Below are positions 15,631-60,501 of a DNA stretch of 64,000 bases, in pieces. The DNA comes from Ruditapes philippinarum (Eukaryota), in contig NW_026865359.1 of the NCBI RefSeq assembly GCF_026571515.1, positions 1 to 64,000 of the forward strand, written 5' to 3'. The notes under the pieces were generated by a model that saw nothing but the letters and a program-made list of their open reading frames with translations, did not search any database and was not told the DNA's origin. How positions within the stretch are numbered: position 1 is the first letter of the stretch; each line of letters opens with the position of its first letter. The translations under genes were made by a program, and so were the position numbers.

Positions 15631-16360
15631 ATGACAGACAAATATTATCGACTAGTTACCATTTTGGTAAATATATGTCCTGGCCCTCTACGGGAATTGT
15701 TTCTGAAACAGGCAGCCGGAGACCCTAATCTCAAGACACCATACACTACATTAGATGCTTATTTAGCGTTCAGGAGAAAAGATATCAATAGAGTTACCCA
15801 AAAACCGAAATGTGTTATACGAAAGGATCAATTTGATTTGTTATTTCCATCTGCTGGGCAAGGTCAAACAGATATCGGCGCATGGGATGTGACATTATTA
15901 ACAGCTCTGTTGAAAAACATTTTTAGCTTAGCCCAAAATGATCTTGTGTGTATCGAAAAAATCAGGACAATCAGAAATGAGCTCCAACATATCGCAGGTA
16001 CGTGTAAAATAACAGAACATGATTTTAAGAATATATACACAAACCTTAGTGTGAACATTGTAAACTTAGCATTATCTGTTAAGGGTCAAGTCTATGCAGA
16101 CAAGATTGAACAAGATATTAAAGAGGTAGAAAGTTCTATATTAACAGATCTAGGAGATGTGCTAAGGTCGTGGTACATGAGCAAAATCGTTAAGTTGGAA
16201 ACAAAAATAGAAAACCTTAAGGTAAAGATAGATGAAATAAAACAAGATACAGGCAAAACCATGAAGACACTGAATAAAACCACTGTCAAGCGAACACGAG
16301 CCGGAGGTAAAAGTTTGAAACGCTTCAAAACTGTTGATCATATACTTGAAAAAATGAGAG
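15631..16360 (+). CDS. Gene A coding exon 1: DZIP3/hRUL138-like HEPN domain and coiled coil
   Basis: Acceptor tttttcag at 15624, ATG at 15631, donor AG|GTAAGC at 16361. Sequence QFDLLFP..WDVTLL..RNELQH..ITEHDF, then heptad-like KLETKIENLKVKIDEIKQD. Confidence 0.88.
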
Positions 16361-19300
16361 GTAAGCCTTCATATGAATTTTAAACTTTATGTCAAAAAGT
16401 AACTGCCATTATAATTTGGTGGTCGTTTAAACCATTGAGACAATGTCTGACAGTAAATGTTGATACTCGTTATTAAAGAATTTTATATATAATAAATAAT
16501 ATAATGTTTATATGATTCTTATTATTGATTTACAATGCTTAAACATTTTTCTTGTGTAATCTACATTATATTTTCAAATAGAAAACTTTGCGTCGTTGCT
16601 GAGGAAGAAACTTAACAGTGATTTTACACCTCCACCAGAAACTGCGAGAATCATTAAAGAAATCGAAGATAATCACCTAGTGGTCGTGTCAGGATACGGC
16701 AAAGGTCTATATCTACAAGCGGCACTCTCTGCTATTGATAACCAGGATTATGAAGCGGGAGAAAGCATCCTATGTTCAAGTCCCACTGACTGGCGCCACA
16801 TCGGTAATGAAGATGCCGAGTTAGTTGTATTCCTTCACCCATTTGGCGAAGGTACATTTGATTTACAGAAGGCAAAAGACTTTCGTTCAATTGCGGACAA
16901 TATTGTAGAGACAACTGACTCCAGGGACAATGATGATGTGCTAGATGTTGTCATAATAATGGACCAATCAATTTTAGAAGAATGGAAACGTCATTTTAGA
17001 CATGATATGATGAAACAACCAATCGTTGTCTACAAACCAACCACTGAAGACTCACCTGTGGACCTTATTGAAGGTACATTTATTTAATTACGCTAATTCA
17101 TTTTATTGTTTACAAATATAACCATGTTTTAAAGGCTTCTGTGTCTGATTATTTATTACTATTTATGACAAAATATTTCACTCATTTGTAGTAAGTCAGC
17201 TATTTGTTAGGTGTGTCACTTCCTTTTATAAACATCAAGATCTAGATACTTGACATAATCCTTTAGAATACATGGTCCTAATCCTACCATTTGAAATATA
17301 CGTTCGGTGTAGGATAAGAACGAGCTACTGATTCAATTATATGATACGATATTATTTATTTCGTTTTTTAGTAGAAAGCAGTATGTCACAGGTTGAAGCA
17401 GATCCACACTACAAAAACTTACTTGGTATGTAAAATTCAGAATTTTTATTAGATGAAAAGAAGCAAGCATATATAACTTATTATCATAGCATCAATATTG
17501 TGTTGCACAATTATGGATTTTTCATTTATGTTAGAAATAGTATAGTCAAACACCTATAAGAATAGTTAACTCTGGTACTTAGTCATCTTAGAAGAATGTT
17601 CGTTTTTTCCTTCTTGCAGTTCAATCAATTGCCTACAATAAACATCATAGAGCAAAGATGGCAGATAAACACTTTTTGGAAAACGCATTGGAAGAATTCC
17701 GCTCCAAGAAGGTAATCGTCATTTCCGGTCCACGTGGCAGTGGAAAAACGACGCTTGCTCTCTCCCTACTGTCGTCATATCAAGATGGTCATTATCTCAT
17801 ACTAACAGAACCGGGTGATCTCAGTTGTATTAGATTCGGTGTCACCTGTGTTGTGATCATCGAAGATCTTGGAGGAAAGTACATGTTCGAAATGTCCGTT
17901 ATTCAAAAGTGGTTGCGGAAGTTTGATATGCTCTACTCGGCAGTCAAAGATGGCAAACTAAACGTGATTATCACATGTCTAAAAGACCGGTTGAGTTCAT
18001 GCGTTCACGATTCGAAGCACCCAATGCTGGAAACTGTCATTGAATTACCGAAAGATTGTTTTGTTGAAATCAAGACAGAGTCATCGACAGGTTCGTATGA
18101 AATGTTCCATCTATCAGTATATTTAATCTTAAATTTTCCGAATATTTGTTTCAATATTGAATCTTAAATTTTGGTAATTATTCATTTATTTACGTTTGCT
18201 GGCTTAAGATATATATTTACATATAAATGTATTTAAAAAAGATCTTATTCTTGTTTGCATAAAGGAAAAAATACGATCTCAAATATGTTTTCAGATGGTA
18301 ATTCTGTAGTGTATGCTGGAAAAAGGTTAGTGCTCTTTTGTTCGTTTTTTTCTATTCCAGTTGATACTTAATTGTCAAGTGTTTGTTTTAGGATAAATGT
18401 TATTGTGTAACAAGCAGAATTTTTATAATCATAACTTGTTTTTATTATCTATTGTTATTTTGTGTGGGTAAGTAAAATATGGGACAAATAAGGTTATAAT
18501 TGTCCCAGGTAAAATATATTTTGATTTTACATCGAAACATCAAAAAAAGACATAAGCATACGACTGATGTATGAATATGAATAGACTTTTACTTAAATTT
18601 CTATATGTGTGACATATTCAGTCGGATAAAGCACACTCTTCAGCCGAAAATGGAACAAACAAAAAATTCAACATAAAATGTGCCATATTCGGTTGGATTG
18701 AGTTTTTCTTTGCTCATCAAAACGTTTTTGTCACTTACCCAAAAATATAAAAATGAACATACGATGTGCTTTTTAATTAAATAAGGCCGTTTTCAATAAT
18801 ATTGTTTATTTAAATATGGTGATGCTGCTGCTGATGATGATGATCATGCTGATGATTATCATGAAAATGATGATGATGATGCTGATAAGATGATGATAAT
18901 GGTTATGTAGATATTGTGGCGGATTTATGATTTGTCAGATTGCACAGTGTTTTGATGATCTTTCTCTTTTGTTTCATAGGCAAAATAAAGACACGTTCTC
19001 TGTTTTCACAATATGAAAAGTAACTTATGTACGAGCATCTGAATTTTACTTTTCTATCATTTTCCCTTTCCTTATCGACACGATAAGTAAACCCCCAAAA
19101 AATGAGCCTATCAACAAGCATACTCTTTTTATATTCCCGACAGACAGTGAGTGCGGTAACTGAAGTGCAGGTAAACAACATACAAGTAAACACTGGATGA
19201 CGTTATATGTTAAAATATCCGGCTCCCTGGTAACTGTTTGGTAGAAATATGACAAAGTCACTTTACCGCTGTAAATAGGTCCCGTCGGGTCTTACATTCT

Positions 19301-22300
19301 GGTCTGTTATGGCAGCATGTTTACAAATTTAAAGCCAAAGGTGACCGTAATATTGAATTCGACAAGTTCAATAAATGCAGAATTGAAGCTTTTGAATTTT
19401 AGGGCAAATGAGCTTGATGTAATTGTTTTGACTTTATATCAAGCTGAAACAAGCTGTTCTTTTTCCGCAATACTTTAACTTCCAGCTGATCAATGCCGCA
19501 ATAGTTTTTTTCGACCTTATTAAATTAACCAAATTTAAATAGTCATAGCTCTTTGAATATTATATTTCAATGGTTAATATTCAGCAAATGCGTATAAAGA
19601 AGAATTATTATATATAAGGGTGGCGTTTGAAGGTTATCTCTTCGCCACATATTGCTCTCAACGAATATAGCTCTCCTGAGAGCATTATCAGTTAACATCA
19701 AACTAGAATTGCAGCGAATATAGCTTCCCACAAATCATTTTACTGATTATCGTCATTGTCATCATCATCTTTTCTTCCACTCCTTCTTCACCTTCTTCTA
19801 CTTCTTCTTCTTCTTCTTTTTTATATATTATCATCAGTACACCATTGTTAGAACATCATCTTTGACAGTACAACATCATAATAAACAGGCATCATCATCA
19901 TCATCATCAGAATCGTAGTCGACATCGTCATAATCAATAGAACATCATCATTATCATTATCATCAGAACATCATCATAAGTATTGATATATTATCTATCT
20001 TTATCATCATAAGTACATCATCAACAAAATCATCTGTGAAATCCTCATAAGTACCATCATTACAACACCATCACCGTGAATTCGAAAGGTTTGAAAATAT
20101 TCTTTCTGATATAAGTGGCACCGTTGCCGGGTGGTTACGAGGGTGGTTCAAAAAGTAATAGGACTGCAGTTCTACTGTTCACATTTTTTAATTTACGTGC
20201 ACAATTTTACAAGATAATAATATCGGAACATATCCTCTATCTACAGTGAAAAAATCAATGAAATATGTTTAGAAATAACGAGTCTGTGAAAATTTCAAAA
20301 AACAAGGGGTACGCGACCCGGCGCACGCTAACAGCACAATAGATGACGTTTATGACGTGGTAAAATAAAAACAAAATGTATCAAGCGTCATCCCTTCTGA
20401 AAAGAATTCTCCCTAGTGTTCTAGGAGTCTAAATCATGTAACTTTGACCAGACCTCATAATGTGGAGAATGAAGCGAGAAAGAAAACGATACATTCTTGT
20501 TCACTCTCCGATAAAAAAAAAGCCCGAAAGCCGGCCACTCTCCCGCTTTTTTCTCGTATTCTTGTATCTAATAGTAATCGATATAGATTAAGCAGCCATG
20601 AACTTATGCATGCTAATAAAAAAGCGATTAATATAATTATTTTTACACATATCATCGTACGTTATTAAAACAATATGATTATGTAAGTAAATAAAAATAG
20701 TTATCAAACTGAAAAAGTAATATTTTCCTACTAGGAACAGCATATCATTTTTAAAAGAAAACGGGGAAAAATATTAATAATTACCGTTAATCATTATTAC
20801 ATATTAAATACTGATAAACATATATCTAGTTTAATGAAATAGAATTTTGTTTGAAACAAAACATTTGGGCAGATCTGAATGCAGAAATCAAACATGCCGG
20901 ACAATTTCGTGACTGTTTACCGTCGATCATTTTGTAGCGCTTTTTGCATTTGACGTCACTAACATCCCGTTCAATTTCCCGCTATCATTCTCATCCTTTT
21001 TCCTGGGGTTTGTGATTTCGTATGTGCAGTTTTTGAATTGCTTGCGGAAAGCTGGGAACGAGTATCCTGATAGCCGATTAATTGTACTGTGTTAATTTTA
21101 TGTTTTCATAATGGGGTATCTAAAGGAGTATCGCCAATTTGTTGGCAAGTTAACTGATCGCACACATTTTCAGTTTTTTTTAACGAACGTCAAATTTCTC
21201 ATTTAAACGTTATGACCACTGCTGTTCAAAACTTGATGATTTAGCCATTTCATGTCTGAATGACGTCAAGTTTGGGCATAATGTCAACTTAAATGTAAAT
21301 AATTGTGTTGGTGGGAATAATGGGGAAAAAAAGAAAATAAATTAAATATAATAAAATAGAAGTTCCAAAATAAGCTTCAATAACGTTTTTATGTGCTGCG
21401 CCGGGTTTTGCGTTGTTGACCATGGTTTTAAATTTGATAACAACGGGGAACAAGGCGTAAAAGGCACAAGAATTCAGTATTTTATGGCTTAAATTTGAAG
21501 AAACACGATTAATTCGATCGCTGTTACATATAAAAATATTCTAAATAGAATTGAATATGAAGATGCAAGACTCTTAGTCCTATTACTTTTTGAACAACCC
21601 TCGTACCTCTCTGGTAGCTGTGTTGGTTCAATACCAACAGGGACAAGCCGTTGTAAATTTAAGCTCATTGCTCTATCTATAACCATATAGCTTTTTCACA
21701 TTCGAATTAATAAGGATGTCTCAAATTTAACAAAATGGATAAATAAAATCATTTTTTCATATCTTTCGAGTCTATACAATTCAATATGTACCCTGACTTG
21801 CGATAACAAGCATCTTTTACTTACAATCAATGTATACTTCAACTTGTATCTTTCTTTGTATAACAGAAAGAAGGCTCGTTTAGGCACTATATTTAAAGCA
21901 TCATGCCTCCAGATTCATGCTTATCTTCTTGAATATTTTGAAAATGTATTTAAGGTAAAATATTGTACAGTGAGCAAAACAAAAACAAATTATGATTCAA
22001 ATAAATAACCAAAAAATGCCATAAAATGGCAAAAAGGCCCATTTTCCTCTAGTTCGACTTTCTTGAAATATTTTTGGTCATCTAGAGGCATACAGCTTTA
22101 TCAAGTTACACGAATTTATTACATGTTTATTAATGTTATAGTAAAAAAAAACAAATATAAATATATCCAAAACATGAATGAGATCAACAATTTCCTTCCC
22201 TGTTATTTATATTAAAAAATATAAGAAAATAGACATCGGACTTCATATCATTTACCATAAAAAATAATTATGATGCTGTTGACAGTGATCAAACCAAGCT

Positions 22301-25255
22301 GATTATGATAAGATAATAAAAAAATCCATAATGTGATGATAATAATAGATATAAAATGGTAGTTATGATTATGATGATGAAAGAGATGATAATTATGATC
22401 TTGATGATAATGATAGGAGTTATAATGATCTAATGCTGATGATCAGTGTAATGATTAATGATGATAATGTTGGTATGCAGGTGTGAATGACTCTGCATTA
22501 TTAATATCCTGATTATGATGTTGAAGAAGATAATGATAATATTTTAATGACGATAAAATGGCAGAAATGATGATTACGGAGGCAATGGTAATTATGGTTT
22601 CGATGAAGAGTATGGTTGTGATAACAATTTTGATGACAATGAGCGTGGTACTGATTTTAAAGTGATGAATATTAAGGTTATAATCATTTCGATATTAATA
22701 GGCATCATGATTATTTTATAAGGAAGGGGCATATTATGATGAATGATGATGATAATGACAATATTCATCATGATTTGAATAATGATGGACGTGATGCTGT
22801 TTTTATTGATGATGATGTTGATGACGATGATGGATTAGGTGATGATTTTGATGATGATAATAGTGATGAATATGATGATGACGACAACATTGATTTAACA
22901 AAGTTCATGACGGGGAGCTCTATTGATCAACACAAGCATCATTTTTTTAATGTTATATTGTGAAAAAACTCCTTAGAGCTTTATTCTTAACTGATAAAGC
23001 TCTTGGATGGCGTTACAGTACCACGTTTATCTTGGCGCTATTTGAGTCAAGATCGAAATACCGCGTACGGTGTTAAGTCTTGAATAGAATTCCACTGAAC
23101 GCACATTATAACTGTGCATTATTACGAATTCTAGATTATAAGCGATGAATAATTGCGCTTGGGTTATATCATTTCGGTTCTACCACACATCAACAAAAAC
23201 TTCTGCCCACCTTATATCAAGGTGCGTCTGATTTATTTCAGCGCGTCACATTTTAATGGTTTCGTCACATATCAAAATAGAGATCATCAACGGTAATTTT
23301 ATTGCAAATTTACACGCACTTTTGGTCCTTCTATATCCAAAAGGGAAAAGTGCAGGTGGTGTAAGATATAAAATAGCACACAATACATCGGACTACATAG
23401 AGTCATTGTGCCCCCACCCCCACAGTTAGCGTTTAACATGTTTGTAGACTAAGTGAATTGTGACTTTAATGCTGAGTCCATATGTGTTGTATGCTTTATA
23501 TCTTAAATAGGTAAATTTGATCATGCCAAGTTGTATTAAGGTGTAATGATGTTGTATATTGGGAAGATGAAATAAGTTTAAGAAAAAAGTGTAATAGTAA
23601 GAGGTTGTTATGAAAAACCAAACATTATAAGAAAGTTCTATTTATTATCATGATTATTATCTTCTTATATAACTCGTATTCCTCAGAAAAATCTTGGATA
23701 ATTTTAATTTCAGTGAATTTAAAGGCATTTGAATTAACAATATATTCTGTGATAAATGTATGGTTCAATGTGACCAAAAACTGTCAGTTTATTCATTTCA
23801 GTGTAGAACAATGATCAGTCAAATATCACTGTTTAAAAACTGCAACAATTGTATTCTAAATAAACAACCTATTTACTACTACATTGTCTACACCTTTAAA
23901 AAAAGACTTGATAAAAGTCCTGTACGCAGAACATGTCTGTTTGATTCTATATATATGGTGTTATATTATATACAGCGTTCAAAAATTAATATGAATCCCT
24001 TTCGGTAACGCTTCATTCATTTGGCTAATGAGTAAATACGGTAATTACAAATGTACACGATATAGGGCTCGAATCTAAGATCACTTTCACTTGAATAACA
24101 GATAAACAAACGTACCACTGGAAAACCTCTGCCCTTTATTTAGTATCATTATTCAAGTACATCTACACAAACACATACCTGTATTATATTTTCTTAAAGG
24201 TCTAGAACATACACATTAATATTTTAGGAAGTGATTTTTTTAATATATAAGCACTTTCATGATGATGAAATTCCAGGAGGTAAACATGTTTTGTATAAGC
24301 ATTAGATTTTGACATCATTTGTCAATAATACTGTTTTATTCATGTATTATTATTATATTTCAGTCCGAACACATCATCCTATAACAGAGTAAAGATGATC
24401 CAAACGCATACAATTAAAACTCCTGAAAATGTGGAAATTTACGAGATGGAAGAATGTTGTCAACATCCAGATGGGTCATTTCTCTATTCAGCCAAAATAC
24501 AAGTATCATCAGTTAATGATAATAAAGATGATTCCATCTATACATCTCAGAGATATAAAACTGTTATTATTCATATCAGTTCAGACTTTGAATACCAATG
24601 TTACTACAATACGGATATAAAAGAAGACTGGTATACTACAAAACATATCTGCTGTACTGATACTGGGGATGTGGTGATGTCTGTGAAAAGAGAATTAAGA
24701 TTGTATAGAATATCAAGCGGAAGTCTTCAATTCATCAAATCTATAGATGTGGGGTTTGAGTGCACAAATATTTCCTTCTTCAAGAATAAGATTAACTGTT
24801 TTACTTATGGGGCATCATTAATTTTAGATACAAATCTAAATATAAAGAGAAGAGTAGAACTCATGGAAATTGCTGCCGACAATATTTTACCATGTTCATT
24901 ACAAAAGTACATCAGTACTTGGGATTCTGATTTTGGCAATAATTGTATCATATGTCAGGATCCCAGACTTAAGCAACTTAAATATTTAAGAAATGAAGGA
25001 TTTCTACCTGAGTGTATATGTGCTGCTACTGAGGACAGTGTATTCGTATTTGGAAAACAGGCTGGGGACTTCAAGATTTTACAGGTGAACACTGACTTGA
25101 TGGTGCTCTCAGAAATATGTAAAAACAATGAAGAGATTTTCCAGTTTCAACAAATGTATGAATATAAAATGGTGTTTGACAAAGATAATTCCAGATTAAT
25201 CATATTCTCAACAGCTACCGGGAACGCATTATTTCGTACAATTTACTTAGAGTAA
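15631..25255 (+). CDS. Gene A (spliced, 889 aa): HEPN_DZIP3-like + coiled coil + degenerate nSTAND3-like domain + nSTAND3-like P-loop NTPase + C-terminal beta-propeller-like domain
   Basis: Exons 15631-16360, 16582-17073, 17372-17425, 17620-18090, 18295-18325, 24364-25255. All introns are GT..AG with phases 1,1,1,1,2, giving one open 2670-nt frame. Motifs: WDVTLL...IRTIRNELQH (HEPN), ISGPRGSGKTT (Walker A), VVIIEDLGG (Walker B). Colinear with gene B. An acceptor 6 nt before the ATG implies an unlocated 5' UTR exon. Confidence 0.85.
16582..17073 (+). CDS. Gene A exon 2: degenerate (pseudo) nSTAND3-like NTPase domain
   Basis: Phase 1-1 exon. LVVVSGYGKGLY sits at the Walker A position, SPTDWRHI follows, and LVVFLHPFG sits at the Walker B (hhhhDDxFG) position. 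Confidence 0.82.
17372..17425 (+). CDS. Gene A exon 3: 54-nt linker micro-exon (VESSMSQVEADPHYKNLL)
   Basis: tttttag acceptor (TAGTAG tandem acceptor), G|GTATGT donor, open in phase 1-1. Same size and position as gene B exon 50796-50849. Confidence 0.7.
17620..18090 (+). CDS. Gene A exon 4: nSTAND3-like P-loop NTPase
   Basis: ttcttgcag acceptor, AG|GTTCGT donor. KVIVISGPRGSGKTTLA, VVIIEDLGGKY, NVIITC. Confidence 0.88.
18295..18325 (+). CDS. Gene A exon 5: 31-nt linker micro-exon (DGNSVVYAGK), phase 1 to 2
   Basis: ttttcag acceptor and AG|GTTAGT donor. Supplies exactly the phase shift needed to join the NTPase exon to the terminal exon at 24364. Confidence 0.65.
20138..21603. mobile_element. 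Tc1/mariner-type non-autonomous element in gene A last intron
   Basis: 28-bp TIR CGAGGGT(G/T)GTTCAAAAAGTAATAGGACT, TA on both sides (20136-20137, 21604-21605), no transposase ORF. Confidence 0.88.
22270..22890. repeat. Degenerate (GAT)n tract; others at 18820-18900, 19740-20075 (CAT) and the duplicate at 61895-62570
   Basis: Directly visible trinucleotide low-complexity sequence. Confidence 0.85.
24364..25255 (+). CDS. Gene A terminal exon: beta-propeller-like (NHL/six-bladed-like) domain
   Basis: tatttcag acceptor in phase 2. About 296 codons of repeated beta-strand/turn pattern (HICCTDTGDVVM, PECICAATEDSVFVFG, MVFDKDNSRLIIF). AATAAA at 25392. Confidence 0.75.
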
Positions 25256-26468: not shown

Positions 26469-28835
26469 TTGAGCTCACCTGTCACAAAGAGACAAGGTGA
26501 TCTTTTGTCATCGCTTTTCGTCCGGCATCTGTCCGTCCGTCGTCCATTAAATTTTACTTTAAACGACAACTCCTCATAAACCACTGAGCAAATTTCATTC
26601 AAATTTCACAAGAATGTTCCTCTGGTGGTCAACTTTGAAAATTGTTCAAAAAATTTAATTCCATATAGAATTCTGGTTGCCATGGCAACTGAAAGGAAAG
26701 AACTTTAAAAAATCTTTTTAAAAAAAAACCCTTAAGAGCTAGAGCATAGATATTTTGCAGTAATCATCTTCTAGTGAGTGTCTTCTAAGTTTGTTTAAAT
26801 AAAAGCACTGAGGTCAAAATTAGTCCCGCACATTGGGAGGTCATGGGTTTTCCCATATGTCAATTGTAAAACTTAAAAAATCTTCCTTAAAAAACTCAAA
26901 GAGATAGAGCTTAGATATTTGGCATGAAACATCTTCTTTGCGTGTCTAAGTTTGTTCAAATAAAAGCCCTGGTGTCAAAATTGGTCCTGCCCCGGGGGTC
27001 ATTGAATGTCCATATATGTCTAATGTAAAAACTTTTGAAAAATATTCTTTTAAAAAACCCCAAAGAGCTAGAGCTAAGATATTAAGCATGAAACATTTTC
27101 TTAATGAGTGTCTACCAATGTTGTTCAAATAAAAGCTCTTGGGTCAAAAATTGGCCCGACCCAGGGGAGGCGATTGTTTTTCCTTATATGTATATAGACC
27201 TTTTTACGACGCGGTCGGATGCTATAAAAATTGACTGGAAGTGGTAGTTTTTCGCGCATGCGCAATTTGCGTAGGGCAAAAGAGCCTTGCCCTACATAGA
27301 AATGTAGTATAAATTCATAGACAATTCGGAGTTAGTTTAAGGTAAAAATTAGAAAATCATATAAAATAGCTTTTAACAGAACACAAAAAATGTCTTCATA
27401 GCTTTATGGACAATATGGCTAAAAGGGTACGGAAAGACGATTTTTTTTAAGAATTCCCCCTTATGATCACGACCCTGACATTGAAATTATTGTTGTAAAA
27501 AATGTTGAAATATATATATTAGCACATAAGCAAATAAGGAAGTCAATTTAATTGTTGTTGAAATCGTCAACATATAAAAACTATTTTATTATAACATATA
27601 ATATATAACATTTAAAAAATCGAGGTTAATTATCAATCTGAAAAAAAGTCAGTACACGTGTTTATAATGGGTTTTAGTTTTCAATTTAGCTAATTTAATC
27701 CTTTATCCGACTTGACTGAGATTCCAAACAAAAAATTTTAAGTCACATATATATTCAAATAATTTTTAAACTCTTGAGAAGTTAAGATGAGTGGTGGAAT
27801 AACACACATTTTGTCCGGTTCCTTGTAACACATGGAAGATGCACGTCACGGACACTATTTGTCACATCACAAAATCAATAAAAATTGATGAGATGGTATA
27901 AATGAAAGTTACTTAAATTACGATTAATCATTTTCATAGTTTTAAGAAATTAATATGTCATGTTACTAAAACGACCCGGTTGAATGATAAACTAGCTGGC
28001 AAATAACAAACCGGTCACGAGCCAACTTGTTTGACACTTACCGCCTTGCCAATCCACTTTCAAAGGAATATATTATATTTTATACATGGGTAATAATATG
28101 TGATCTTTAACACCCTGCTGTTTTAATTTAAATTACTGATGAAAAAGTCACCTAATGATACCTTGAATAGAGGACTTTTGGTCGTTGAATTACAAGTCCC
28201 GCTAATTTTGTGTATCTGTTATAACATATCAATTCACGTTTTAAGTACTTACCACCTCTATTCATTCCCAAAATTTCTTTTATCTGGGTGACATAACTTG
28301 AAATCACGCCTTTTAAAGCCTTAAAGTACACTAGAATGTATTATATCTTTATTGAGCTTTGGCCCTACGCAGAATGCGCATGCGCTAAAATGCAACATAC
28401 GTTGCTATAGAAAAATCGTACTGTAAAAAGTCTATAGTAAAAAAAAATATTTAAAAAAAAACCAGAGAGCTAGAGCTTAGATATTAAACATGGTACATTT
28501 TCTAGTGAGTGTCTAGATTTTCATGGAGAAAATCCTTTTAAAACACCCAAAGAGCCAGAGCTTAGACATTTGGCATGAAACATCTTCTAGTGGGTGTCTA
28601 CAAAGAATGTTCAAATAAAAGCCCTTCTTTCTAAAAGTTCTTTCCCTAAGTAATGGTAACCAGTAATCTTTTTACACATGCACTAATTCAGATACAAATA
28701 TGAACTTTGTGATATCAGTTTTAGATTTTATATTCTGCTTTTGTTTATAGATTACAATAATACTAATATATGTTCCTTGTCATGGAGAGTTTTATAAACA
28801 GGTGAGCGATTTTAAGGCCATCATGGCCCTTTTGT
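26469..28835 (+). mobile_element. Helentron/HINE-like non-autonomous element (bivalve pearl/DTC84-type layout) with internal tandem repeats, interrupted by a nested insertion
   Basis: 5' AGCTCACCTG, GTCC microsatellite, ~165-bp core repeats, 3' CAGGTGAGCG plus GGCCATCATGGCC hairpin, T-rich flanks. Confidence 0.8.
27195..28434. mobile_element. Nested DNA element with TAGAC...GTCTA ends, superfamily unassigned
   Basis: Ends TAGACCTTTTTAC / GTAAAAAGTCTA with TA on both sides; subterminal inverted GCGCATGCGCA..TGCGTAGGGC. Removing it restores the host repeat unit (tatatgtatatagtaaaa). A related partial copy lies at about 430-780. Confidence 0.7.
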
Positions 28836-43879: not shown

Positions 43880-46720
43880 TATGCAGGCCTCATAACCTCA
43901 GATCTATTTTCAAAATTCCATTTTCTTTACATGCGTCTGGTTTCCATCAGTGTCAACCACTTCCTCTGGCATCACATTTCTCTGACTGGGTCCCAGCCGT
44001 TTTATGTTATCCAAGAATTCATTTGGATTTTGCGTTACCGTTGTTGCAATATCCTCTGCTATAAAGCGTCTGTATTCACGTTCGCATTGTCGTAGACGCT
44101 TATCGAAACGAGCCCTTGCGTGTGAATATTGCAAAAGTTTAACGTCCCGTTGATCTCGGGAACCATAACATTTAATAATTTCATACTCAGATGATGTCAC
44201 AACATCCAATAATTGGCTTAGCTCGTCGTTCCAATAAGGTTTATTATTTTTGCGTCGTTTATTCATTCTTGAAGATACTTTTTGTACTGGTATACTGTAT
44301 ATTTAACGATGTCACAATATAAAGAGTAAAATATATCAATTTCATCTTGAATCAATCAAAGTAATTACGTCTAATAAAGCATTTCTAGCTCGTTCATTAT
44401 CCATAAAGACACAAAGTATTTTGTTCAGTTTGTTACTAGGTTCATTTTTACAATTACCGGTTTTGTCTGGCGTGTTGTGTAAAGGATTCGTTTTATCTAA
44501 TACCTTAACGGTAAAATACCCTTTCAATATATAGTGGTCAGAATAACAAACAACAGGGCCATGATGGCCCTGAAGTCGCTCACCTGTATATAGGCCCACA
44601 GAGCGAGGCCAGTTTAAACCCCAGGGCTTTTATTTGAACAAAATTGGTAGACACCCATTACAAGATGTATCATGTTAAACATCTAAGGTCTAGCTCGTTG
44701 AGTTTTTAAAAAAAAGATTTTTTAAGTTTTTATTATACACGTATAGTTAAAAGCAATGACATCCCTAGGGCGGGGCCAGTTTTGACCCCAGGGCTTTTAT
44801 TTGAACAAACTTTGAAGACACTCACTAGAAGGTGTTTCATGCTTAATATCTAAACTCTAGCTATTTCTTTTTATTCAAAGAAGATTTTTAAGTTTTTGCT
44901 ATACACATATAAGGAAAATTAATGTCCCCCGGGGCAGGGCCAATTTTGACCCTAGGGCTTTTATTTGAACAAACTTTGAAGATACTAACTGGAAGATGTT
45001 TCATGCTTAATATCTAAACTCTAGCTATTTTGGTTTTTTCAAAGAAGATTTTTTTAAAAAGCTTTTGCAATGCACATATAAGGAAAATCAATGACCCCCG
45101 GGACGGGGCCAATTCTAACCCCAGGGTACTTATTTGAACAAATTTGGTAGACACCCATTAGAACATCTTTTATGCTAAGTATCTTAGCTCTAGCTCTTTG
45201 GCTTCTCTAAAAGAAGTTTTTTTAAGTTTTTACTATATGCATATAGGGAAAATCAATGACCCCCTGGGGCGGGGCCAATTTTGACCCCAGGGCTTTTATT
45301 TGAACAAAATTGATAGACACTCATTAGAAGATGTTTCATGCTAAATATCTTAGCTCTAGCTCTTTGGGTTCTTTAAAAGAATATTTTATAAGTTTTTACT
45401 ATATGCATATAGGGAAAATCAATGACCCCCTGGGGCGGGGCCAATTTTGACCTCAGGGCTTTTATTTGAACAAACTGGATAGACACTCACTAGAAAATGT
45501 TTCATGCCAAATATCTAAGCTCTACCTCTTTGGGGTTTTTAAAAGAAGATATTTTAAGTTTTTTTTCTATCGGTTGCCATGGCAACCAGAGTTCTGCATA
45601 GAATTAAATTCGTTGAACAATTTTTAAAGGTGACTACCAAAGGAACATTCCTGTGAAGTTTGGCTCAGCGGTTTGTGAGGAGATGCCATTTAAAGTAAAA
45701 GTTTACGGACGACGGACGACGGACGGACGGACGGGCGGACGCCGTGCGAAAAACGATCACAAAAGCTCACCCTGTCACTTTGTGACAGATAAGCTAAAAA
45801 TGACTCCAAGCAATTGTAGTTATCTTGGGGTACACACATTTAGTCTACTTAAAATTTTCCTTTATGAAATACATGTGTAATTTTCGAATCATTTAGAAAA
45901 TCAACAAATTCTCTACAATGCTGATTAATACAGTAATCTATACTTTATCGGGTAGGTATATGATCGATATTTCCAAGAATGTCTGACATCAGTACAAATA
46001 ATCATAAAGTCAATGTTTTTGTACAAATATATCAATAATTAAATATGTGAAAAGAATTATTGAGCATTTCTACCAAAATGGAGTTTTCAAGGTGTACTAG
46101 TAAGTTACATGAAAATAATAGCACATTGTTGTATAATGATCGATTTTTAAATTAAATAAGGAAAACACCCTCATATGATATATCAGGAATATTTACATCG
46201 TATAACTAATACATCCAAATGTTATTAATACACCAACACCTCCTGAACTTTTTGATGCGTTTTTATCAATATGACTTCTGATAAGTCCTAACAAAACATA
46301 GTTATCAATTTCAATAACGTTATCGTTAATCGTAACGTTATCGTTTATAAGATGTGTTTCACATACAGAAACAATATAAACGTCAATGGCATTAATAAGA
46401 GCACATCTAAATTTATGGTTGTTTGCCGTCCATCCACAAACGTTAAAATGCGCGACCCTTAAATTGCCTTGAAGAAGGGTACTGTTCTACTGTTCTAAAC
46501 GTCATGATTGTCCAGGTCAGAATGTCGTTGACGACCATTCGCGTCCACCCGGAAGCTGCGCCCATTAGGCATCTCACAAAGTAACGTATGAGTATTGATC
46601 TCAATCAGTCTTTCAGCATGTGATTTACTGCTCTTTAGTAATGTTCTTTTGTAATGTTCACTCTTATTTAGCCTCATTTTATTTATTGATATCTGAATTT
46701 TTTTCATCCTTAGAGGCAAA
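43880..46720 (-). mobile_element. Decayed non-LTR retrotransposon fragment (CR1/L2-like): ORF1 tail, APE endonuclease and linker; RT absent
   Basis: The minus strand reads LRVAHFNVCGW...IVSVCETHL...SGGVG (about 46470-46230), YSDH (about 44545) and KPYWNDEL...NPNEFLDNIKRLGP (43910-44266). SSKSHAERLIEIN...FRVDANGR resembles an ORF1 C-terminus. Confidence 0.8.
44549..45797 (-). mobile_element. Helentron/HINE-like element, same family as 26469-28835, inserted in a LINE
   Basis: GGGCCATGATGGCCC hairpin plus CGCTCACCTG, about 6 tandem core repeats (gaccccagggcttttatttgaacaaa...), GACG microsatellite. Confidence 0.82.
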
Positions 46721-48210: not shown

Positions 48211-48463
48211 TTTTCGAGTTTTGTAATGTATGTCTGCTTGATGTTGTGCTTATCCCCAAACAGTTGCAAAATTGAGGTCATTCAATCTATCAATGTTCAC
48301 AAATGTATGCACTTTGATGCTCTCTTTTTGCACTTACGCATCTTAAGGTCACGGTCACAATGACCCTTTAACATATACATAAATATTTTTTATTTTGCCT
48401 ATAAATTAAACATGCTTCAAGTAAAGAATTATACATAAGAATATATTCTTTTTACAGATAATC

Positions 48464-49136
48464 ATGGCGGACAAGTATTATAGGCTTGTGTGTTTTCTAG
48501 TTAACATTACTCCCCGACCACTAAGAGAGTTATTCCTTAAGTACACGTGGACGGACCCAAAATTTTCAACTTGTTCAACCATTGATGCTTGTCTTAAATT
48601 AATGAAACATCAGCTTTACCTTTTAAAGAAGAAAAAAATAATCAGACAGAAACAATGGGAACTCCTGTTTCCATCAACACCTGGTAAGGTGGTAGATGAA
48701 ACATCTTGGGACATAACTCTGGTTATTATATTAATAGAGGAATTTCACGGAAACAAGCTTCAACAGGTAGAAGAAGACGCTATTTCCAAGATACGAGGAA
48801 TTCGAAATCGACTTCAGCACTTTGCTGAAACTTCAATTGATGATGCAGACTTTGACAATATGTGGACAATTTTAGAATGCGCAACCATTGATATAGCTAA
48901 GCAAATACAACCTTCACCTATGTACGTAAACGCTATTCAAGGAAACATTAACGAAACCAAAATTAATAATCTGCCGAATCTCGGAGATTCTTTACGTTAC
49001 CTATATGAGACTATTATAATTCAAATGAAATCTGACATGGAAGATATGAAAGAAATCATGGAAGAACTTGCTGAAAAATGTAATGAATCTCGAAACATTC
49101 TTCTGAACACAACTGAGAAGCGTGTTGGACCAACTG
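48464..49136 (+). CDS. Gene B coding exon 1: DZIP3-like HEPN and coiled coil
   Basis: QWELLFP..WDITL..RNRLQH..IDDADFDNMW. Acceptor tttacag at 48457, donor G|GTATTA at 49137. Confidence 0.88.
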
Positions 49137-52100
49137 GTATTATAGTTACTCTAATATTAATTCATCCTGGCATTATATACTCCATCGCAATGATTATTTT
49201 TTAATTTTTATTAGATTATTTTTTCTTAATTCGTCCAAAGATATGATTGGATATAACTCGTGTGTTAACATGGGTTTGCAGTTGCAAAATATATGAACAA
49301 ATATGCAATCTAATTAAGAAAACAGCAATGAATGGAAGCGAAAGGATATCATTTTGAGCTTAAAACGCAAAATCATGAGTAAAAACAAATGATTGGTTTG
49401 GATTGCAAGATGGTAGAAAATCTGATTCAAAGCAATGTTATTAATACCTAAGATGGTCCCAATTATTTTTGTTTTAAAAGTGTTTTAAAAATTCCGAATT
49501 TATTTTTGTTCTTTTATAGGTGAAAAAGTAAAACGAATGAAAACAGTTGACCATATTCTTAAAAGACTAAATGGTATGTGGAATTCAAGTAACCTAAAAT
49601 CAATTATAAACCATGGCTTCAAAACTTACAAGTGCCTTACTAATTTGTTATATATTTAACGTACTTATGCTGTGTTTTGTAATTAAACAACTTTGATCCG
49701 TTTAAAATAAGTTGAATATTTATTGTTCATTTAATATTGACAGGGTAAAGTAAGATGTATAAATAAATAAATATATTCATTAATCTGTTCATTTATAAAT
49801 CATTTCGAAAGATTAAAACAAATTTTAGAATATTAACTTTCTCTACAAATGCATCGCCTAAATAAGAGACAAATCATTAAATAAAATATTTCCATTAAAC
49901 AGTAAAAATACCATCATCCTATTGTACAACTTATTCATTTCTGAAATGATTTGTCAAAATTACATTAATATATGTGTCATTAATCCTCATTAAAAAGAAA
50001 AATAAATACGTTTTTAAATTTTTATTCATGTTTCAAGACAATTTCACCATGTCGATGAAAGAGGACTTGCCAAATAACTTCGATAGTCCACCGGAAGTCG
50101 CTGATATCAAAACAAAGCTGCGAGATGTTCACCACGTCGTTGTTACAGGGTCAAGGGGTAGTCGGTATATCGAAGCTGCTCTAGCTTCATTACAAAGTAT
50201 GGACTACAATCATAATCGATGTGTTGAAATGAAAAATTCGTGTGACTGGCGACACATAGACCCGGATGAAGTGGATCTTGTATTATGCCGAGAACCTTTT
50301 GGCGACTATGTGTTTGATAAGGACAAGACAAAATCTATGGCAGATATATTCAGTAGTATGCTACAAGTTGCAAAGATTTCTGAAAAGTACAAGAACATAG
50401 ATATTGTGATCGTGTCCGAGAAGGAAATACTCCAGGAAGTATTAAAGTTCACGGAACATGACCTTCTTCAGGAAGTGGTAGAAGTTTATCAGCCTACAAC
50501 GGAATCAGATCCAGCAGATCTAACAGGTTAAATGTTCTTTTTGTACTTATGTACTTGGAAGTCTGCCACTTTTCTAAACGATATGCAATTGGATCATGGT
50601 TCTTTTATTGATAATACTCTGATTGGATAAAACAGTTTAATATTTCTATGATACAGCAGAATAATAAAGATTGAGAAATAAGATTTATTAACGAGTTACA
50701 TATAGATAAAACAATATTGTTTGTGTCTGAACATGTACAGAAAAAGTTGTTGATTATAAAACATAAGTTAAATTTACTTCTTATACTTCGAATAGGTACA
50801 TGTGGCAATTCCGAGATGGATTTTGATCAAGCAACACGGAATCAGCTGGGTAAGAGAAAACAAATCTATTATTTATATATCAGTTAAGTTCATTTACGAA
50901 AAAAATCAACTTAGTTTTCGATTTCCGCTTGAATTGCAGAATTATAAGTAACAGGTAAAGTAAAATGTTCAAAAGAAATCTAAAAGCATAAACTACATGT
51001 AATCAGTTAGATAAGTAACAATAAACCAACAATAATGGCATTAATTAATGTTTCAATATTTTTCGATAAAAACAATCAATGAATTACTTTAAAAGTAGAT
51101 TCAATTCAATTCAGGGGCTCATTGACATGCCGGGTCAGAAATTTTTTTTTGAAATAAATTTTCCATTTGATGTTGGTCTAGACCAATATTTTCTTGTAAA
51201 AATTTCAGATCATTTGCTCTTTTCGCGCAATTTGTTTTTTTTTTCCAGAAAATGTCGATCAAACAGTGTGCCATGATAAATCTATATGCATGCCTATGTA
51301 CTTTCGGTATATTAATTGTTCAATTCAACAAATGATTAGAAACTCTTGATTTTAATTTGCACTTCGATAATGATTTGAAGGCAATATGTACAATCACTTT
51401 CGACCATAATCTTCTAATTCGATACCATTTATTACTGGTGTTACAATTTCAGGATACAATTTTATATGTGGTTTGTGTAGTTATGTGCTTTAAAATATTC
51501 TAGAATAAACACCAAAAGGAATGTGGTATAGAATTTTCAACATTTAATAAAAATGAATATCATGAGAGAAAAAAATATTTTTTCAAACAAAAATCGTTTC
51601 AGATTTAACTGCGGTATTTGTTGAGCGGTACAAAGATGACAACCTGCATCCCGCTAGTGTTGTAAATGAGGCGAGAACGACATTTAAGAGAGACAAGGTT
51701 ATTGTTATAACAGGGCCGAGGAAATGTGGAAAGACTACTCTGGCTGTAACGCTAGCATCAAGGTACCAGAAAAACCAGTTTCTGGTTCTCAACAAACCTG
51801 ATGACATGAAACTAATAAGGCTTGGCTGTATTTGTACTGTATTAGTTGAGGACTTTGCGGGGAAAGGCAGTTACAATGGTACCTATGCAGAAGCTTGGTT
51901 AAGAGAATTTGAACTGCTGTTCAGTGCCGTATGTTCTGGAAAGCTAAATGTTATTATAACGTGCGAGAAGAGAACACTTCTTAAATGCAATGAGGAAAAC
52001 GGTCCTCACCCAATTCTCAAAAACACCATCGTTCTCGAGCAAGTCAGCAGAACTGTTAAGCAGGAATCAACTAGTACTGGTACTATTTTTCATGGTTTTG

Positions 52101-55100
52101 TATTTTTGTAATAACTTTTTAAATAATTACAGTGACAGGAATTTAATGTTATTAGTATTTAAAGATATTTTTTGTAAGTAATATTTGTTTGAGTGGATAT
52201 CATTTTTCACAATCTTATTTTCATAACAAATATACATTTACAGATTTCAATGACACAGCCGCCATTGCAACACGTACTGTACAAAGGTGTTCGTTCAGTA
52301 TGGAAACGTAAGTTGAGAGTTCATTTTTTCGTTTATCCAATTGTTACTTTTAGATTAGTATTATTTCTCCTGAACTAAAACTTCTGTAATCAAAAATTTG
52401 ATGAAAAATCAATTATACATAAGTGCAGTGTGACGCCGCATTTTTATACGCCCGAAATAATATCGGCGTATATTGTTATGCACTTGGTTGTTCGTCCGTC
52501 CGTCTGTCCGTCCGTCCGTCTGTTAAAGGGTTGTATTTTTCGGTCTGTATTTTTTGAACCGGTTGAAGGAAATTCAAAGTACTTGGCAGACATATTTACC
52601 ATAATCAGACATATTTACCATAATCAGAAGATGTGCAGAGCGAAGGTTTGACCTTTCTCATGTCAAGATCAAGGTCTCACCTAGTCATTTTGTTTTAATA
52701 TCAAAATGTTTTGTCCGCTTTTAATCTTTTGAACCGATAAAAAGAAATTAAAGCTTTTTGGCATACATATTACTTATATTGAAACGGTGTGCAGAACACA
52801 AGTTTGAACTTCCTAAAATTAAATTTGACCCCGCCCCGGGGATACATTGATTTACATAGACTTATATAGGGATGTTCGTGTCTGGTCTGTATCTTTTGAG
52901 CCAGTGAAAAGAAATTGAAACTATTTGAAATGTTGTTAATCATAATGAGATGATATGCAGAGCGCAGTTTTGGACTACCTCAGATCAAGGTCAAGGTCAC
53001 ACTGACTCATTCAAAATACTTATTTAAAGTGTATATATTACAAAAGGAGTTGACAATGTATGAATTTATTGATATGTTTCCTCCAAATATATACATATAT
53101 ATATATATGAACATGTATTAACCTCTCTTTATTTTTATTACTTTATAATGTTGTTGTTTTTTTTTCTTTTCAAACTTTATTTTTTTAGATTTTTGTTTCT
53201 GTTAAGATTAAAATAATTAAGGACCTTTTATTGGTTTCTATGATTTAATTATTTTTTAATGAGACAATCTTATTAATTGAAATTGATGTTACTTGAGATA
53301 TGTAAATTCACTAAATAATAATAAGTTTTAAATGAGGCATATAAAAAGTCAAGTAACAAATCCAAGATCTCAGTTATTTGGCATGTATTATTACACAGAA
53401 GAACCCTGCTATTTTTTCCAAGTATCATTTCTCTGATATTATAAAATGGCTGTGCCCAGAGGGTTAGAATATGGGCAGGTCTGACACAGTTTACGTGTAC
53501 ACAGATTTGTATAGTACGCATGTTTTAAAAGTCTTTTCCTCCACTTTACAACATGCAGAGCATAAATATTTAGCTTGTATCATCACTTTTTAAAAGTAGA
53601 ATTATTAGTTTTGTGATGAATGTTTGTGTGAGTATTGACGTTATAAGTGTAACGGGAGGTTATAAAAAGAAGAAAATTAGTTGTAAGCATTTTATTATTT
53701 ATATGCACAATATTTTGTGCTTCTGAATTTCTGATATAATATCATTTTATGTTTCTTTGAATTGTTATCATTTAAAATCAACAATATTGTTGTTTTCTGT
53801 CAGTATATATACTCCGTGACAATTGCATTGAGATAATTAATCACCATAGTAGTTTTTAAGGGCATGAGTGGTGACATGTCAGGGGTATGTTCTCCACAGC
53901 CGAAGGTGTGGCATATACAATTGTCACTAAGTATTCATGTGACAAGAGCATATCTCTTTGACATGTATCAATATAGATCTCAATATTGATAATTGAAATA
54001 AAACATGTTATGAACAAATTTTATAAATGGTATCCTCTCTGTTGAACATTATTTTTGACAACTTTAAATTTTATTTACTTAAAACAAATTTGCATTCGGA
54101 CGTATATTGCCACGCTATGCTGTGTTCTTGTTTATTCTGCCAAGGTTGATATTTTTGAACATTGATAAATTAGATTTGTCATCAAAATGGTCACCAAATA
54201 TTGTTAAAAAGTATTACTTTATAACTTCATAGAGAATCATTATTAATAACAGACATTAAGTTGTGATTATAAAATTTAAACAATTACAAAAACAAACATT
54301 TTCATTCTTTAGAAATAACAACTTTGTTTCCAACGAATCAGACCACGTTGAAAAGAGTACACACTCTTCAGACGCATTCAACAACATAAAAGACACGTGT
54401 TCAATGAATGAGAACACTATTCTTTGTCTAAATTCAACTGGAACAGTCTTAAAGCTTGACAAAGAGCTCGATGTCGAGGCAACGTTTTTAACAGAACAAC
54501 AAACGGCTTTTGAAAGGATATGTTGCTTAGATGATGATAGGTTCCTTCTTGTGAATGGCAAAGAAGTTTCTATATATGAACTGAAGTCAAATGAGATTCA
54601 CCTCATAACGACAACGATTCTTGACCACGAATCTGACTTTATAGCAAAGGGAAAAAAAGGAATGATAACAATCTTAAACAAGAACATCATATACGAGTAC
54701 ATGTATGACGGTTACTTTGAATTACAGTTTAAAAAGCTCCTTCCTATGAAACCATTGATGGACAGTTTCGTAACAGACGCGTCCGTCATATCTGAACGAA
54801 ATTGCGTTATCGTTGTAAAACAGGGTTCCATTCAATCGATAACATACAAAGAAAAAAGGACAATTGAACGAGTACTATATTTTGAAAGAAATGAAATTCA
54901 ACCAGTGGCTGTTTGTGCTGGAAAGGAAGTTGTACTTATTCTTTGTCTGCAGAACAATCAGGCGAAAGTTTTGAAGTTTGGAATTGATCTTGAGAAACTT
55001 GGATCTATCAGGCTTGACGAGGTTGCATACAGCCCATTCAACGTCTCATCAATGATGTATGATTCAAACTTATCCAGACTTCTTATCACATACAGCGGAA

Positions 55101-55162
55101 AACTTGACGCTTTCGTAGGCGGTAAGATTCGTTGTTCCTTCTTCTTACAAACTGGGCGTTAA
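48464..55162 (+). CDS. Gene B (spliced, 886 aa): paralog of gene A, HEPN_DZIP3-like + coiled coil + degenerate nSTAND3-like + nSTAND3-like NTPase + beta-propeller-like
   Basis: Exons 48464-49136, 49520-49573, 50038-50526, 50796-50849, 51603-52079, 52244-52307, 54313-55162. GT..AG introns with phases 1,1,1,1,1,2, giving an open 2661-nt frame. MADKYYRLV vs MTDKYYRLV in A; IRGIRNRLQH; ITGPRKCGKTT; VLVEDFAG. Acceptor again 6 nt before the ATG. Confidence 0.87.
49520..49573 (+). CDS. Gene B exon 2: 54-nt micro-exon (GEKVKRMKTVDHILKRLN)
   Basis: ttttatag acceptor, G|GTATGT donor. The peptide matches gene A GKSLKRFKTVDHILEKMR. Confidence 0.85.
50038..50526 (+). CDS. Gene B exon 3: degenerate nSTAND3-like domain
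   Basis: VVVTGSRGSRY at the Walker A position, DWRHIDP, LVLCREPFG at the Walker B position. Ends PTTESDPADL, like A's PTTEDSPVDL. Confidence 0.83.
50796..50849 (+). CDS. Gene B exon 4: 54-nt linker micro-exon (GTCGNSEMDFDQATRNQL)
   Basis: aatag acceptor after a pyrimidine tract, G|GTAAGA donor, open in phase 1-1. Confidence 0.7.
51603..52079 (+). CDS. Gene B exon 5: nSTAND3-like P-loop NTPase
   Basis: The frame is open upstream of the listed ORF (51806): KVIVITGPRKCGKTTLA...TVLVEDFAGK...NVIITC...HPIL. tttcag acceptor, G|GTACTA donor. Confidence 0.87.
52244..52307 (+). CDS. Gene B exon 6: 64-nt linker exon, phase 1 to 2
   Basis: tttacag acceptor, AC|GTAAGT donor, open (DFNDTAAIATRTVQRCSFSME). 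Confidence 0.72.
52441..53010 (+). mobile_element. HINE-like fragment in gene B last intron
   Basis: tttttatacgcccg..cggcgtata hairpin, GTCC microsatellite, tcaaggtcaaggtca core repeats. Confidence 0.6.
54313..55162 (+). CDS. Gene B terminal exon: beta-propeller-like domain
   Basis: ttctttag acceptor in phase 2. RICCLDDDRFLLV, PVAVCAGKEVVLIL and MMYDSNLSRLLITY parallel the motifs of A's terminal exon. Confidence 0.75.
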
Positions 55163-60357: not shown

Positions 60358-60501
60358 NNNNNNNNNNNNNNNNNNNNNNNNNNNNNNNNNNNNNNNNNNN
60401 NNNNNNNNNNNNNNNNNNNNNNNNNNNNNNNNNNNNNNNNNNNNNNNNNNNNNNNNNNNNNNNNNNNNNNNNNNNNNNNNNNNNNNNNNNNNNNNNNNNN
60501 N
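60358..60501. other. Assembly gap (144 N)
   Basis: Run of n characters. Confidence 1.

Follow-up and report, generated by a model that had tools for sequence, protein, structure and literature searches.

Two spliced genes that lie in tandem on the + strand of the window (by which we mean the whole stretch of 64,000 nucleotides analysed here, the first 64 kb of the 123-kb contig C13846 of the Manila clam Ruditapes philippinarum, in a genome of 1.41 Gb and about 31% GC) are, on balance and in our opinion, probably intact members of a venerid family of cytosolic conflict or immune receptors, similar to the nucleotide-binding leucine-rich-repeat (NLR) proteins and equipped with a DZIP3-type HEPN domain as effector. 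Gene 1 and gene 2, as we call them, both place a HEPN domain, P-loop domains and a propeller in that order, which agrees with the effector, NTPase and sensor layout proposed in a preliminary description of this sequence, and the same tripartite succession ending in a repeat sensor is found in the annotated relatives P0001, P0007, P0009 and P0010. They would represent an undescribed variant of HEPN-headed NLR-like receptors, a general idea that has been in the literature since 2013, and what is new here is the pairing of a dead with a live NTPase, the missing STAND arm, a predicted coiled-coil dimer and a diversification specific to the propeller.

How are the two genes built?

Gene 1 comprises six exons between 15631 and 25255, whose 2670 nt are predicted to encode 889 aa, and gene 2 seven exons between 48464 and 55162, for which the corresponding figures are 2661 nt and 886 aa. 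We derived our models from splice signals and junction phases, from the homology of gene 1 to gene 2 and from tblastn with a RefSeq paralogue (P0001, apparently the copy on C1963; XP_060580204.1, uncharacterized protein LOC132736991, 889 aa); this paralogue has the exon plan of the window genes and served as our proxy for the full-length protein, while the domain searches were run exon by exon. Both protein lengths in the preliminary description were reproduced exactly, as were the common domain order and splice phases, with the addition that gene 2 has one extra phase-1 intron, and every exon-sized open reading frame (ORF) that it named is present on the + strand where it had been placed. All introns of both genes run from GT to AG, all splice sites are intact, no exon holds an in-frame stop or a frameshift, and in both genes the last junction is in phase 2 and all the others are in phase 1.

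The first exon of gene 1 (15631-16360), recognised from its ORF and from Pfam PF18738, encodes HEPN_DZIP3 and the coiled coil and ends in phase 1 at the donor G|GTAAG. There follow, each in phase 1-1, an exon for a degenerate nSTAND3-like P-loop domain, our pseudo-NTPase (exon 2, 16582-17073), a 54-nt micro-exon with AG/GT sites that links the P-loop domains (exon 3, 17372-17425; 88% identical to residues 409-425 of P0001 by tblastn) and an exon for an nSTAND3 P-loop NTPase, identified by Pfam PF20720 and its motifs (exon 4, 17620-18090). A 31-nt micro-exon (exon 5, 18295-18325; acceptor TTTTCAG, donor GTTAGT) then leads to the terminal exon (24364-25255, including the stop codon), which encodes the predicted six-bladed NHL-like beta-propeller. 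The peptides of the two micro-exons, ESNMSKVEADPHYKNLL and DGNSVVYAG, both occur in P0001.

Gene 2 repeats this plan. Its HEPN_DZIP3 and coiled-coil exon (48464-49136; Pfam PF18738) ends at the donor G|GTATTA and is followed by a 54-nt exon 2 (49520-49573) that tblastx and tblastn identify as the counterpart of the end of gene 1 exon 1, and whose peptide, GEKVKRMKTVDHILKRL, is 94% identical to the Mercenaria protein P0009. The additional phase-1 intron of gene 2 (49137-49519) falls at a point, near 16308, where gene 1 exon 1 is uninterrupted, and the coding sequences of the two genes align exactly across the junction. Next come the degenerate nSTAND3-like domain (exon 3, 50038-50526, from an alignment and a Pfam score below cut-off), a 54-nt micro-exon (50796-50849) of the same length and phase as its gene 1 counterpart that was chosen by splice signals and frame, the nSTAND3 NTPase (exon 5, 51603-52079; Pfam PF20720 and motifs) and a 64-nt micro-exon (52244-52307) that leads from phase 1 to phase 2, has AG/GT ends and was picked, by splice signals and phase, from three open 64-nt candidates for its consensus donor GTAAGT. 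The terminal exon (54313-55162, behind the acceptor TTCTTTAG) encodes a divergent propeller, the B type, which shares about 20% identity with the gene 1 propeller. The micro-exons of gene 2 are placed by splice signals, frame and length and are the least certain elements of the model, the one at 50796-50849 most of all.

What takes each gene from phase 1 to phase 2, and so keeps the propeller in frame, is the micro-exon just ahead of the terminal exon, 31 nt long in gene 1 and 64 nt in gene 2. Direct splicing of gene 1 exon 4 to the propeller, via a phase-2 donor 4 nt past the end of exon 4, was considered and rejected, because gene 2 has no conserved counterpart of that donor and the micro-exon peptide forms part of the RefSeq paralogue. 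A search of the last intron for micro-exons as conserved islands was uninformative; the paralogue introns are themselves 78-88% identical.

A dead and a live P-loop domain

The second P-loop exon scores well above the nSTAND3 (PF20720) cut-off of 27.2 bits, with 47.8 bits in gene 1 and 46.6 bits in gene 2, and it has both Walker motifs (GPRGSGKT at 17727-17750 and VVIIED at 17850-17867 in gene 1; GPRKCGKT at 51713-51736 and TVLVED at 51836-51853 in gene 2). The first P-loop exon remains below the same cut-off, at 23.6 and 22.8 bits, with SGYGKGLY (16689-16712, gene 1) and TGSRGSRY (50145-50168, gene 2) at the Walker A position, and the alignment shows the Walker A Lys-Thr and the Walker B acidic pair to be lost in every family copy examined. 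The two exons are nevertheless homologous and colinear (hhalign probability 95%, E 2.7e-8, 130 columns). The low score, the lost Walker residues and the homology to the second copy therefore mark the first P-loop, as far as sequence can tell, as a pseudo-NTPase derived from nSTAND3. The double nSTAND3 of the preliminary description accordingly survives as a tandem of homologous P-loop domains and not as a pair of nSTAND3 domains that both pass the profile and keep their motifs.

Because both P-loops are single, symmetrical phase 1-1 exons, the pair fits an origin by exon duplication with subsequent inactivation of the first copy. Nor does the dead copy seem to be idle: its ratio of non-synonymous to synonymous substitution rates (dN/dS) of 0.33 signifies purifying selection, and it therefore appears to be functional as something other than an NTPase. 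In the AlphaFold2 (AF2) model of the full-length paralogue both P-loop regions adopt alpha/beta folds; the second extends to about residue 570, and after some 30 low-confidence residues the propeller follows from about 604. No helical or winged-helix STAND arm follows the second P-loop in this model, and the exons of 471 and 477 nt are too small for one. In 2004 Leipe and colleagues are said to have defined the STAND/NLR NTPases by just such an arm, helical and winged-helix, directly after the P-loop, and it is on this point that the earlier view of a STAND- or NLR-type module gives way. A sequence search of the chains in the Protein Data Bank (PDB) returned P-loop motif matches and nothing further.

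The HEPN domain and its coiled coil

HEPN_DZIP3 (PF18738) is matched with 48.6 bits by gene 1 and 54.2-54.5 bits by gene 2, the Pfam cut-off being 27, and the Rx4H motif that had been noticed at the outset is intact in both, as RNELQH (15973-15990) and RNRLQH (48803-48820), with an Asn directly after the Arg. The wider pattern R-N-x-L-Q-H is retained in the R. philippinarum paralogues and in P0009 as well as in the window genes. In the paralogue model the HEPN region is all-helical, at a predicted local distance difference test (pLDDT) score of only 35-60, and behind it one long helix, at about residues 129-210, corresponds to the coiled coil that the preliminary description had placed there.

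When two copies of gene 1 exon 1 were given to ESMFold2, they were predicted to form a parallel, in-register coiled-coil dimer (chain pLDDT 80-83), with contacts at residues 171-214 and also at residues 6, 9-10 and 122, the last of these two past the catalytic His. The interface score (ipSAE) of this homodimer was 0.48, a mark that 21 of 30 solved homodimers and none of 23 solved monomers reach; the best control gave 0.00, and the runs share at least 50% of their contacts. The prediction supports dimerisation of the exon 1 product via its coiled coil. Since the coiled coil is predicted to dimerise alone, the HEPN pair may be pre-formed rather than assembled by the ligand, which weakens the ligand-driven oligomerisation that the preliminary description had envisaged.

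A propeller that varies

The terminal beta-rich domain, also anticipated in the preliminary description, is predicted by AF2 from the gene 1 exon to be an all-beta propeller (pLDDT 75, predicted template modelling score (pTM) 0.77, from an alignment of 7 sequences). Foldseek with this model retrieved propellers in general, and VIA-align placed the NHL domain of Brat first (Z 21.7, root-mean-square deviation (rmsd) 2.8 Å over 238 residues), which is six-bladed, with Mei-P26, TRIM2/3/71, Lin41 and NHL-2 at Z 18-21; NHL entries fill the top 16 rows, and WD40 and other propellers rank lower, at Z 15-17. The predicted fold is thus six-bladed and NHL-like, yet the sequence signature is another matter: neither propeller exon has a match to Pfam NHL at E<=1, and the terminal exon is without any Pfam match, so that the profile check suggested earlier comes out negative. 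The propellers are acidic, with isoelectric points (pI) of 4.9-5.5, which argues weakly against an RNA ligand; despite the NHL likeness, then, we slightly disfavour RNA as what the propeller binds.

Pairwise Nei-Gojobori comparison among paralogues of the gene 1 type (gene 1, gene 3 and the copies on C10784, C1963 and C8466) gives a dN/dS of 0.43 for the HEPN and coiled-coil exon, the pseudo-NTPase value already quoted, 0.24 for the NTPase and 1.09 for the propeller (bootstrap 95% interval 0.83-1.42), with 2.17 for the propellers of gene 1 and the C10784 copy. The six propeller copies have accumulated at least 341 nucleotide changes and not one stop, where neutral evolution should have left at least 20 (P<=1.7e-9), and the high propeller ratio is therefore, on this count, not decay. 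Variable positions are unevenly spread, and the last blade contains hypervariable stretches. A ratio of about 1.1 that is specific to the propeller and comes without stops supports, from the sequence side, the reading of this domain as the sensor.

Exchange between paralogues has probably left its mark too. Between gene 1 and gene 3 the synonymous divergence (dS) of the propeller is 0.13, against 0.61, 0.65 and 0.34 in the exons of the head; that dS should differ two- to five-fold between exons of one gene pair, with the propeller exon lowest, points to gene conversion or exon exchange between paralogues. Gene 3, at 96430-103723 on the same contig and strand as the window genes, has an intact propeller exon behind a frameshifted head, and RefSeq models it (P0015) as a truncated protein of 303 aa. 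In the C10784 copy the HEPN exon is split.

How might the proteins work, and what else could they be?

If genes 1 and 2 do encode receptors of this kind, we would imagine that the coiled coil holds two chains as a parallel dimer with their HEPN domains side by side, and that the pseudo-NTPase and the NTPase together act as an intramolecular, nucleotide-dependent switch. The hypervariable, acidic propeller would recognise a non-self ligand, for which a protein is likelier than RNA, and the bound ligand would release or re-orient the HEPN pair into a composite Rx4H active site, which would in turn cut cellular or viral RNA and lead to translation arrest or an abortive response, as with RNase L. 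RNase activity, nucleotide switching and ligand sensing are all steps that we infer.

Several observations weigh against this picture and deserve to be set out together. P0007 (XP_053405834.1), from Mercenaria mercenaria, has RNSLQR in place of the HEPN motif and has lost the catalytic His while retaining the full architecture, and it follows that not every family member can be an RNase. The HEPN fold assignment is carried by the hidden Markov model (HMM) match and by ESMFold confidence only, the predicted exon 1 dimer interface is mostly generic coiled coil, which is an easy case for prediction, and the full-length paralogue model (pLDDT 59, pTM 0.34) is too poor for conclusions about how the domains are arranged with respect to each other. 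With the STAND arm absent from the model, the usual oligomerisation logic of NLR and Avs proteins may not apply and is therefore not to be assumed. As for the propeller, a domain-averaged dN/dS of about 1 is not in itself proof of positive selection, and the variable sites show no significant enrichment in loops over strands (Fisher p 0.41).

The loss of the His in P0007 would fit a HEPN domain that is a non-catalytic RNA-binding or adaptor module, as has been discussed for sacsin and human DZIP3, with signalling or scaffolding performed through the coiled coil and the NTPase pair. The isolated HEPN domain of sacsin is reported to bind RNA, and the HEPN exon is the least constrained part of the head (dN/dS 0.43). 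We nonetheless hold this to be unlikely, given that R-N-x-L-Q-H is kept in the window genes, the R. philippinarum paralogues and P0009, and that Rx4-6H is kept in 194 of 202 DZIP3-type HEPN proteins of the pearl oyster (PMC9646362). The propeller invites a different thought, namely that the proteins are post-transcriptional regulators like TRIM-NHL and no immune receptors at all, with the propeller recognising motifs in the clam's own mRNAs and HEPN degrading the transcript. Its best structural matches are indeed the RNA-binding NHL domains of Brat, Mei-P26, TRIM71/Lin41 and NHL-2 (Z 18-22), but the missing Pfam NHL match and the low pI speak against this, and regulators with housekeeping duties would not typically show a dN/dS of about 1.1, turn over in tandem as multiple copies or be confined to venerids, so that we think it distinctly improbable.

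That these are young duplicates drifting towards pseudogenes, with the high propeller dN/dS reflecting relaxed constraint and nothing more, might be suspected from the frameshifted head of gene 3 and its 303-aa RefSeq model, from the split HEPN exon on C10784 and from a headless, orphan propeller exon described below. We give this the least credence of all, since genes 1 and 2 are free of stops and frameshifts with every splice site intact, the six propellers have changed so much (P<=1.7e-9) without acquiring a stop, and the heads are constrained at a dN/dS of 0.24-0.43. Only a shade less improbable to us is recognition of self and non-self among conspecifics (allorecognition, or defence against transmissible neoplasia) in the manner of the fungal HET-type NLRs. 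The hypervariable sensor, the turnover in copy number and the mosaic exon histories would all suit it, and fungal NLRs with such features are reported to control allorecognition (PMC13449251), but the same signatures fit pathogen-driven evolution equally well.

Relatives, copies and neighbours

The layout of genes 1 and 2 is common to RefSeq paralogues of 889 and 893 aa in R. philippinarum and to proteins of 894 and 872 aa in Mercenaria, and RefSeq already models the paralogues, as uncharacterised proteins. A profile search with the propeller found only 9 proteins among 1.84 billion representatives, and the named relatives all come from R. philippinarum or Mercenaria mercenaria (Veneridae), so the family seems, as far as seen, to be limited to venerid clams; word-indexed protein searches gave 5, 7 and 1 matches, numbers that reflect the index and are no measure of absence. 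Within the genome the gene-1-type propeller occurs in six copies, 67-75% identical, and the B-type propeller of gene 2 in a single copy. The head domains are far more numerous, with about 40 exons of the live P-loop type ('exon-3-like'), at least 150 matches to HEPN_DZIP3 (319 candidates) and 194 nSTAND3 candidates, many of which lie 2-3 kb downstream of a HEPN match on the same strand.

About 9 kb downstream of gene 2, on the + strand, an orphan propeller exon of the gene 1 type begins at 63929, continues to the end of the window at 64000 and ends at position 64811 of the contig, with an intact ORF, an intact phase-2 acceptor (TATTTCAG) and 69% amino-acid identity to the propeller of gene 1. 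It is preceded by a copy of the last intron of gene 1 (intron 5; 60164-63995 against 18607-24433, 83-84% identity). No HEPN/NTPase head accompanies it, a search upstream for a linker micro-exon of the gene 1 type found none, and at the edge of the duplicated segment there is a gap in the assembly (N, 60358-60501). Three readings suggest themselves, namely that gene 2 uses the exon as an alternative end, that it is a relic, or that the assembly is at fault here. The first of these leads to the attractive if rather improbable idea of a modular system, in which a conserved chassis of HEPN, coiled coil and P-loops is joined, via the phase-setting micro-exon, to exchangeable, hypervariable propeller cassettes, with 63929-64811 as one of them. 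Were this true, one head would serve two sensor specificities, a switching of sensors at the level of exons that is undescribed for NLR-like receptors, and the mosaic dS would be the trace of ongoing cassette exchange between paralogues.

Elsewhere in the genome, C13327:95000-104999 holds an exon-3-like nSTAND3 exon (GPKKCGKT); the ORF 2.7 kb upstream of it has COR-A and Death domains and may either provide this type of NTPase exon with another head or simply belong to a neighbouring gene. On C7470 (44154-45098), about 4 kb downstream of the head of a distant paralogue, a 314-aa ORF has weak matches to propeller repeats (SBBP, Mal s 1-like) and no significant sequence similarity to the window propellers (hhalign probability 1.7%); the family may carry several unrelated propeller types. 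The intergenic parts of the window contain a satellite-like tandem repeat with a unit of 164-166 bp, at 26701-27167 and, in the opposite orientation, at 44603-45563, together with tandem repeats of a 156-bp unit (42180-42908) and of 17-, 87- and 190-bp units (59193-59800). Rfam has no match in the window.

How do these genes compare with known systems?

Few unexplored expansions of immune-type genes in bivalves and corals are as large as those of the HEPN-headed NLR-like genes. Fusions of the DZIP3 HEPN domain to NACHT, LRR, TPR, CARD or Death domains, in lineage-specific expansions, were described in the oyster and Nematostella (Anantharaman et al. 2013, PMC3710099); the pearl oyster has more than 50 HEPN-NACHT-repeat genes, for which Takeuchi et al. 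(2022, PMC9646362) proposed a role in sensing inside the cell, with a putative RNase site; in corals a DZIP3-like HEPN domain is often found at the N-terminus of NLRs (PMC10236652); and HEPN_DZIP3 is among the expanded families of the Manila clam (PMC11592408). Two mollusc clusters in a protein atlas, with 63 and 89 members, combine PF18738 with PF20720, one of them under the name 'DZIP3/hRUL138-like HEPN/Novel STAND NTPase 3 domain-containing protein'. The suggestion in the preliminary description that the architecture was without precedent is thus too strong, HEPN_DZIP3 with NACHT or nSTAND3 and repeats being already published or listed for bivalves and corals (PMC3710099, PMC9646362, PMC10236652 and the atlas clusters). 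Our literature search found no paper that links nSTAND3 to HEPN or describes a dead and live P-loop pair or an NHL-like propeller, and no reported experiments on proteins of the HEPN-nSTAND3-propeller type. No new category is opened here, but we think that this subfamily would make a tractable model, compact at about 890 aa, with a domain per exon, a dead and live NTPase pair, a predicted dimer and a diversifying sensor. With it one could examine whether the DZIP3-type HEPN domains of animals act as RNases gated by a ligand, and how an effector can be controlled by a P-loop switch that has no arm, questions of some relevance to disease resistance in a major aquaculture species.

The bivalve and cnidarian HEPN_DZIP3-NACHT-repeat proteins share with genes 1 and 2 an N-terminal DZIP3 HEPN domain with Rx4H, a central P-loop NTPase and a C-terminal repeat sensor, as well as large, tandem, lineage-specific expansion and a proposed role in intracellular sensing with an RNase effector, and all of them are known in silico only. 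The window genes differ in having nSTAND3 instead of NACHT, in dead and live copies and without the arm, a coiled coil between effector and NTPase, and an NHL-like propeller instead of LRR, TPR or WD40 repeats. The canonical mollusc HEPN_DZIP3-nSTAND3-ankyrin genes, of which C4797 in this genome provides an example, combine these two Pfam families in identical order and are likewise expanded across the genome. There, however, the HEPN exon is followed by one exon of 883 codons that encodes a single nSTAND3 (110 bits), about 400 residues and ankyrin repeats, whereas in genes 1 and 2 nSTAND3 scores about 47 bits, each P-loop occupies its own phase 1-1 exon, one copy is dead and the sensor is a propeller. 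The NTPase at C4797:3500-10500 also matches the candidate defence family PDC-S73, at 48.6 bits and over the whole P-loop domain.

The TRIM-NHL proteins (Brat, Mei-P26, TRIM2/3/71 and NHL-2) resemble the window genes in their six-bladed propeller (Z 18-22, rmsd 2.8-3.6 Å, about 240 residues) and in the coiled coil upstream of it; genes 1 and 2 differ from them in the absence of an NHL sequence signal and of RING and B-box domains, in the acidic surface of the propeller and in their HEPN and NTPase N-terminus. RNase L and Ire1, with HEPN domains of the KEN type, are animal RNases whose activity depends on the juxtaposition of two HEPN domains. A (pseudo)kinase module that binds nucleotide and a repeat domain that binds the ligand exert the control in them, but they belong to another HEPN family, have a kinase-fold regulator and ankyrin or lumenal sensors, and their activity is demonstrated, while that of genes 1 and 2 is predicted.

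The preliminary description had called the two genes Avs-like, and it is true that the bacterial Avs5 (AVAST type 5) has the composition SIR2-nSTAND3-TPR (bioRxiv 10.1101/2025.07.08.663546), that is, the same tripartite logic of effector, nSTAND3 and repeats with an NTPase of the same Pfam family. Avs5 differs in its SIR2 effector, full AAA+/STAND module, helical repeats and bacterial host, and the PADLOC model of Avs5 matches the window P-loop with E 0.0019 and 14.3 bits over residues 12-54 only (about 40 residues); the best PADLOC matches to the window NTPase, PDC-S73 and PDC-S01, likewise cover the P-loop only. Because the Avs5 model extends no further than the P-loop and the STAND arm is missing, we class the resemblance as one of working principle, an analogy and not membership. 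Closer in concept is a prokaryotic system of two nSTAND2 genes (Kaur et al. 2021, PMC8195603), one for an inactive STAND that is fused to HEPN or GT4 and the other for its active STAND partner. There the partners are separate proteins in a predicted toroid, and in the window genes they belong to the nSTAND3 family, have no arm and occupy two exons of a single animal polypeptide, but in both a STAND-type module that is dead for NTP binding stands beside HEPN and works, or in our genes would work, with an active paralogous NTPase, which makes that system, by analogy, the closest conceptual precedent for a dead and live pair next to a HEPN domain.

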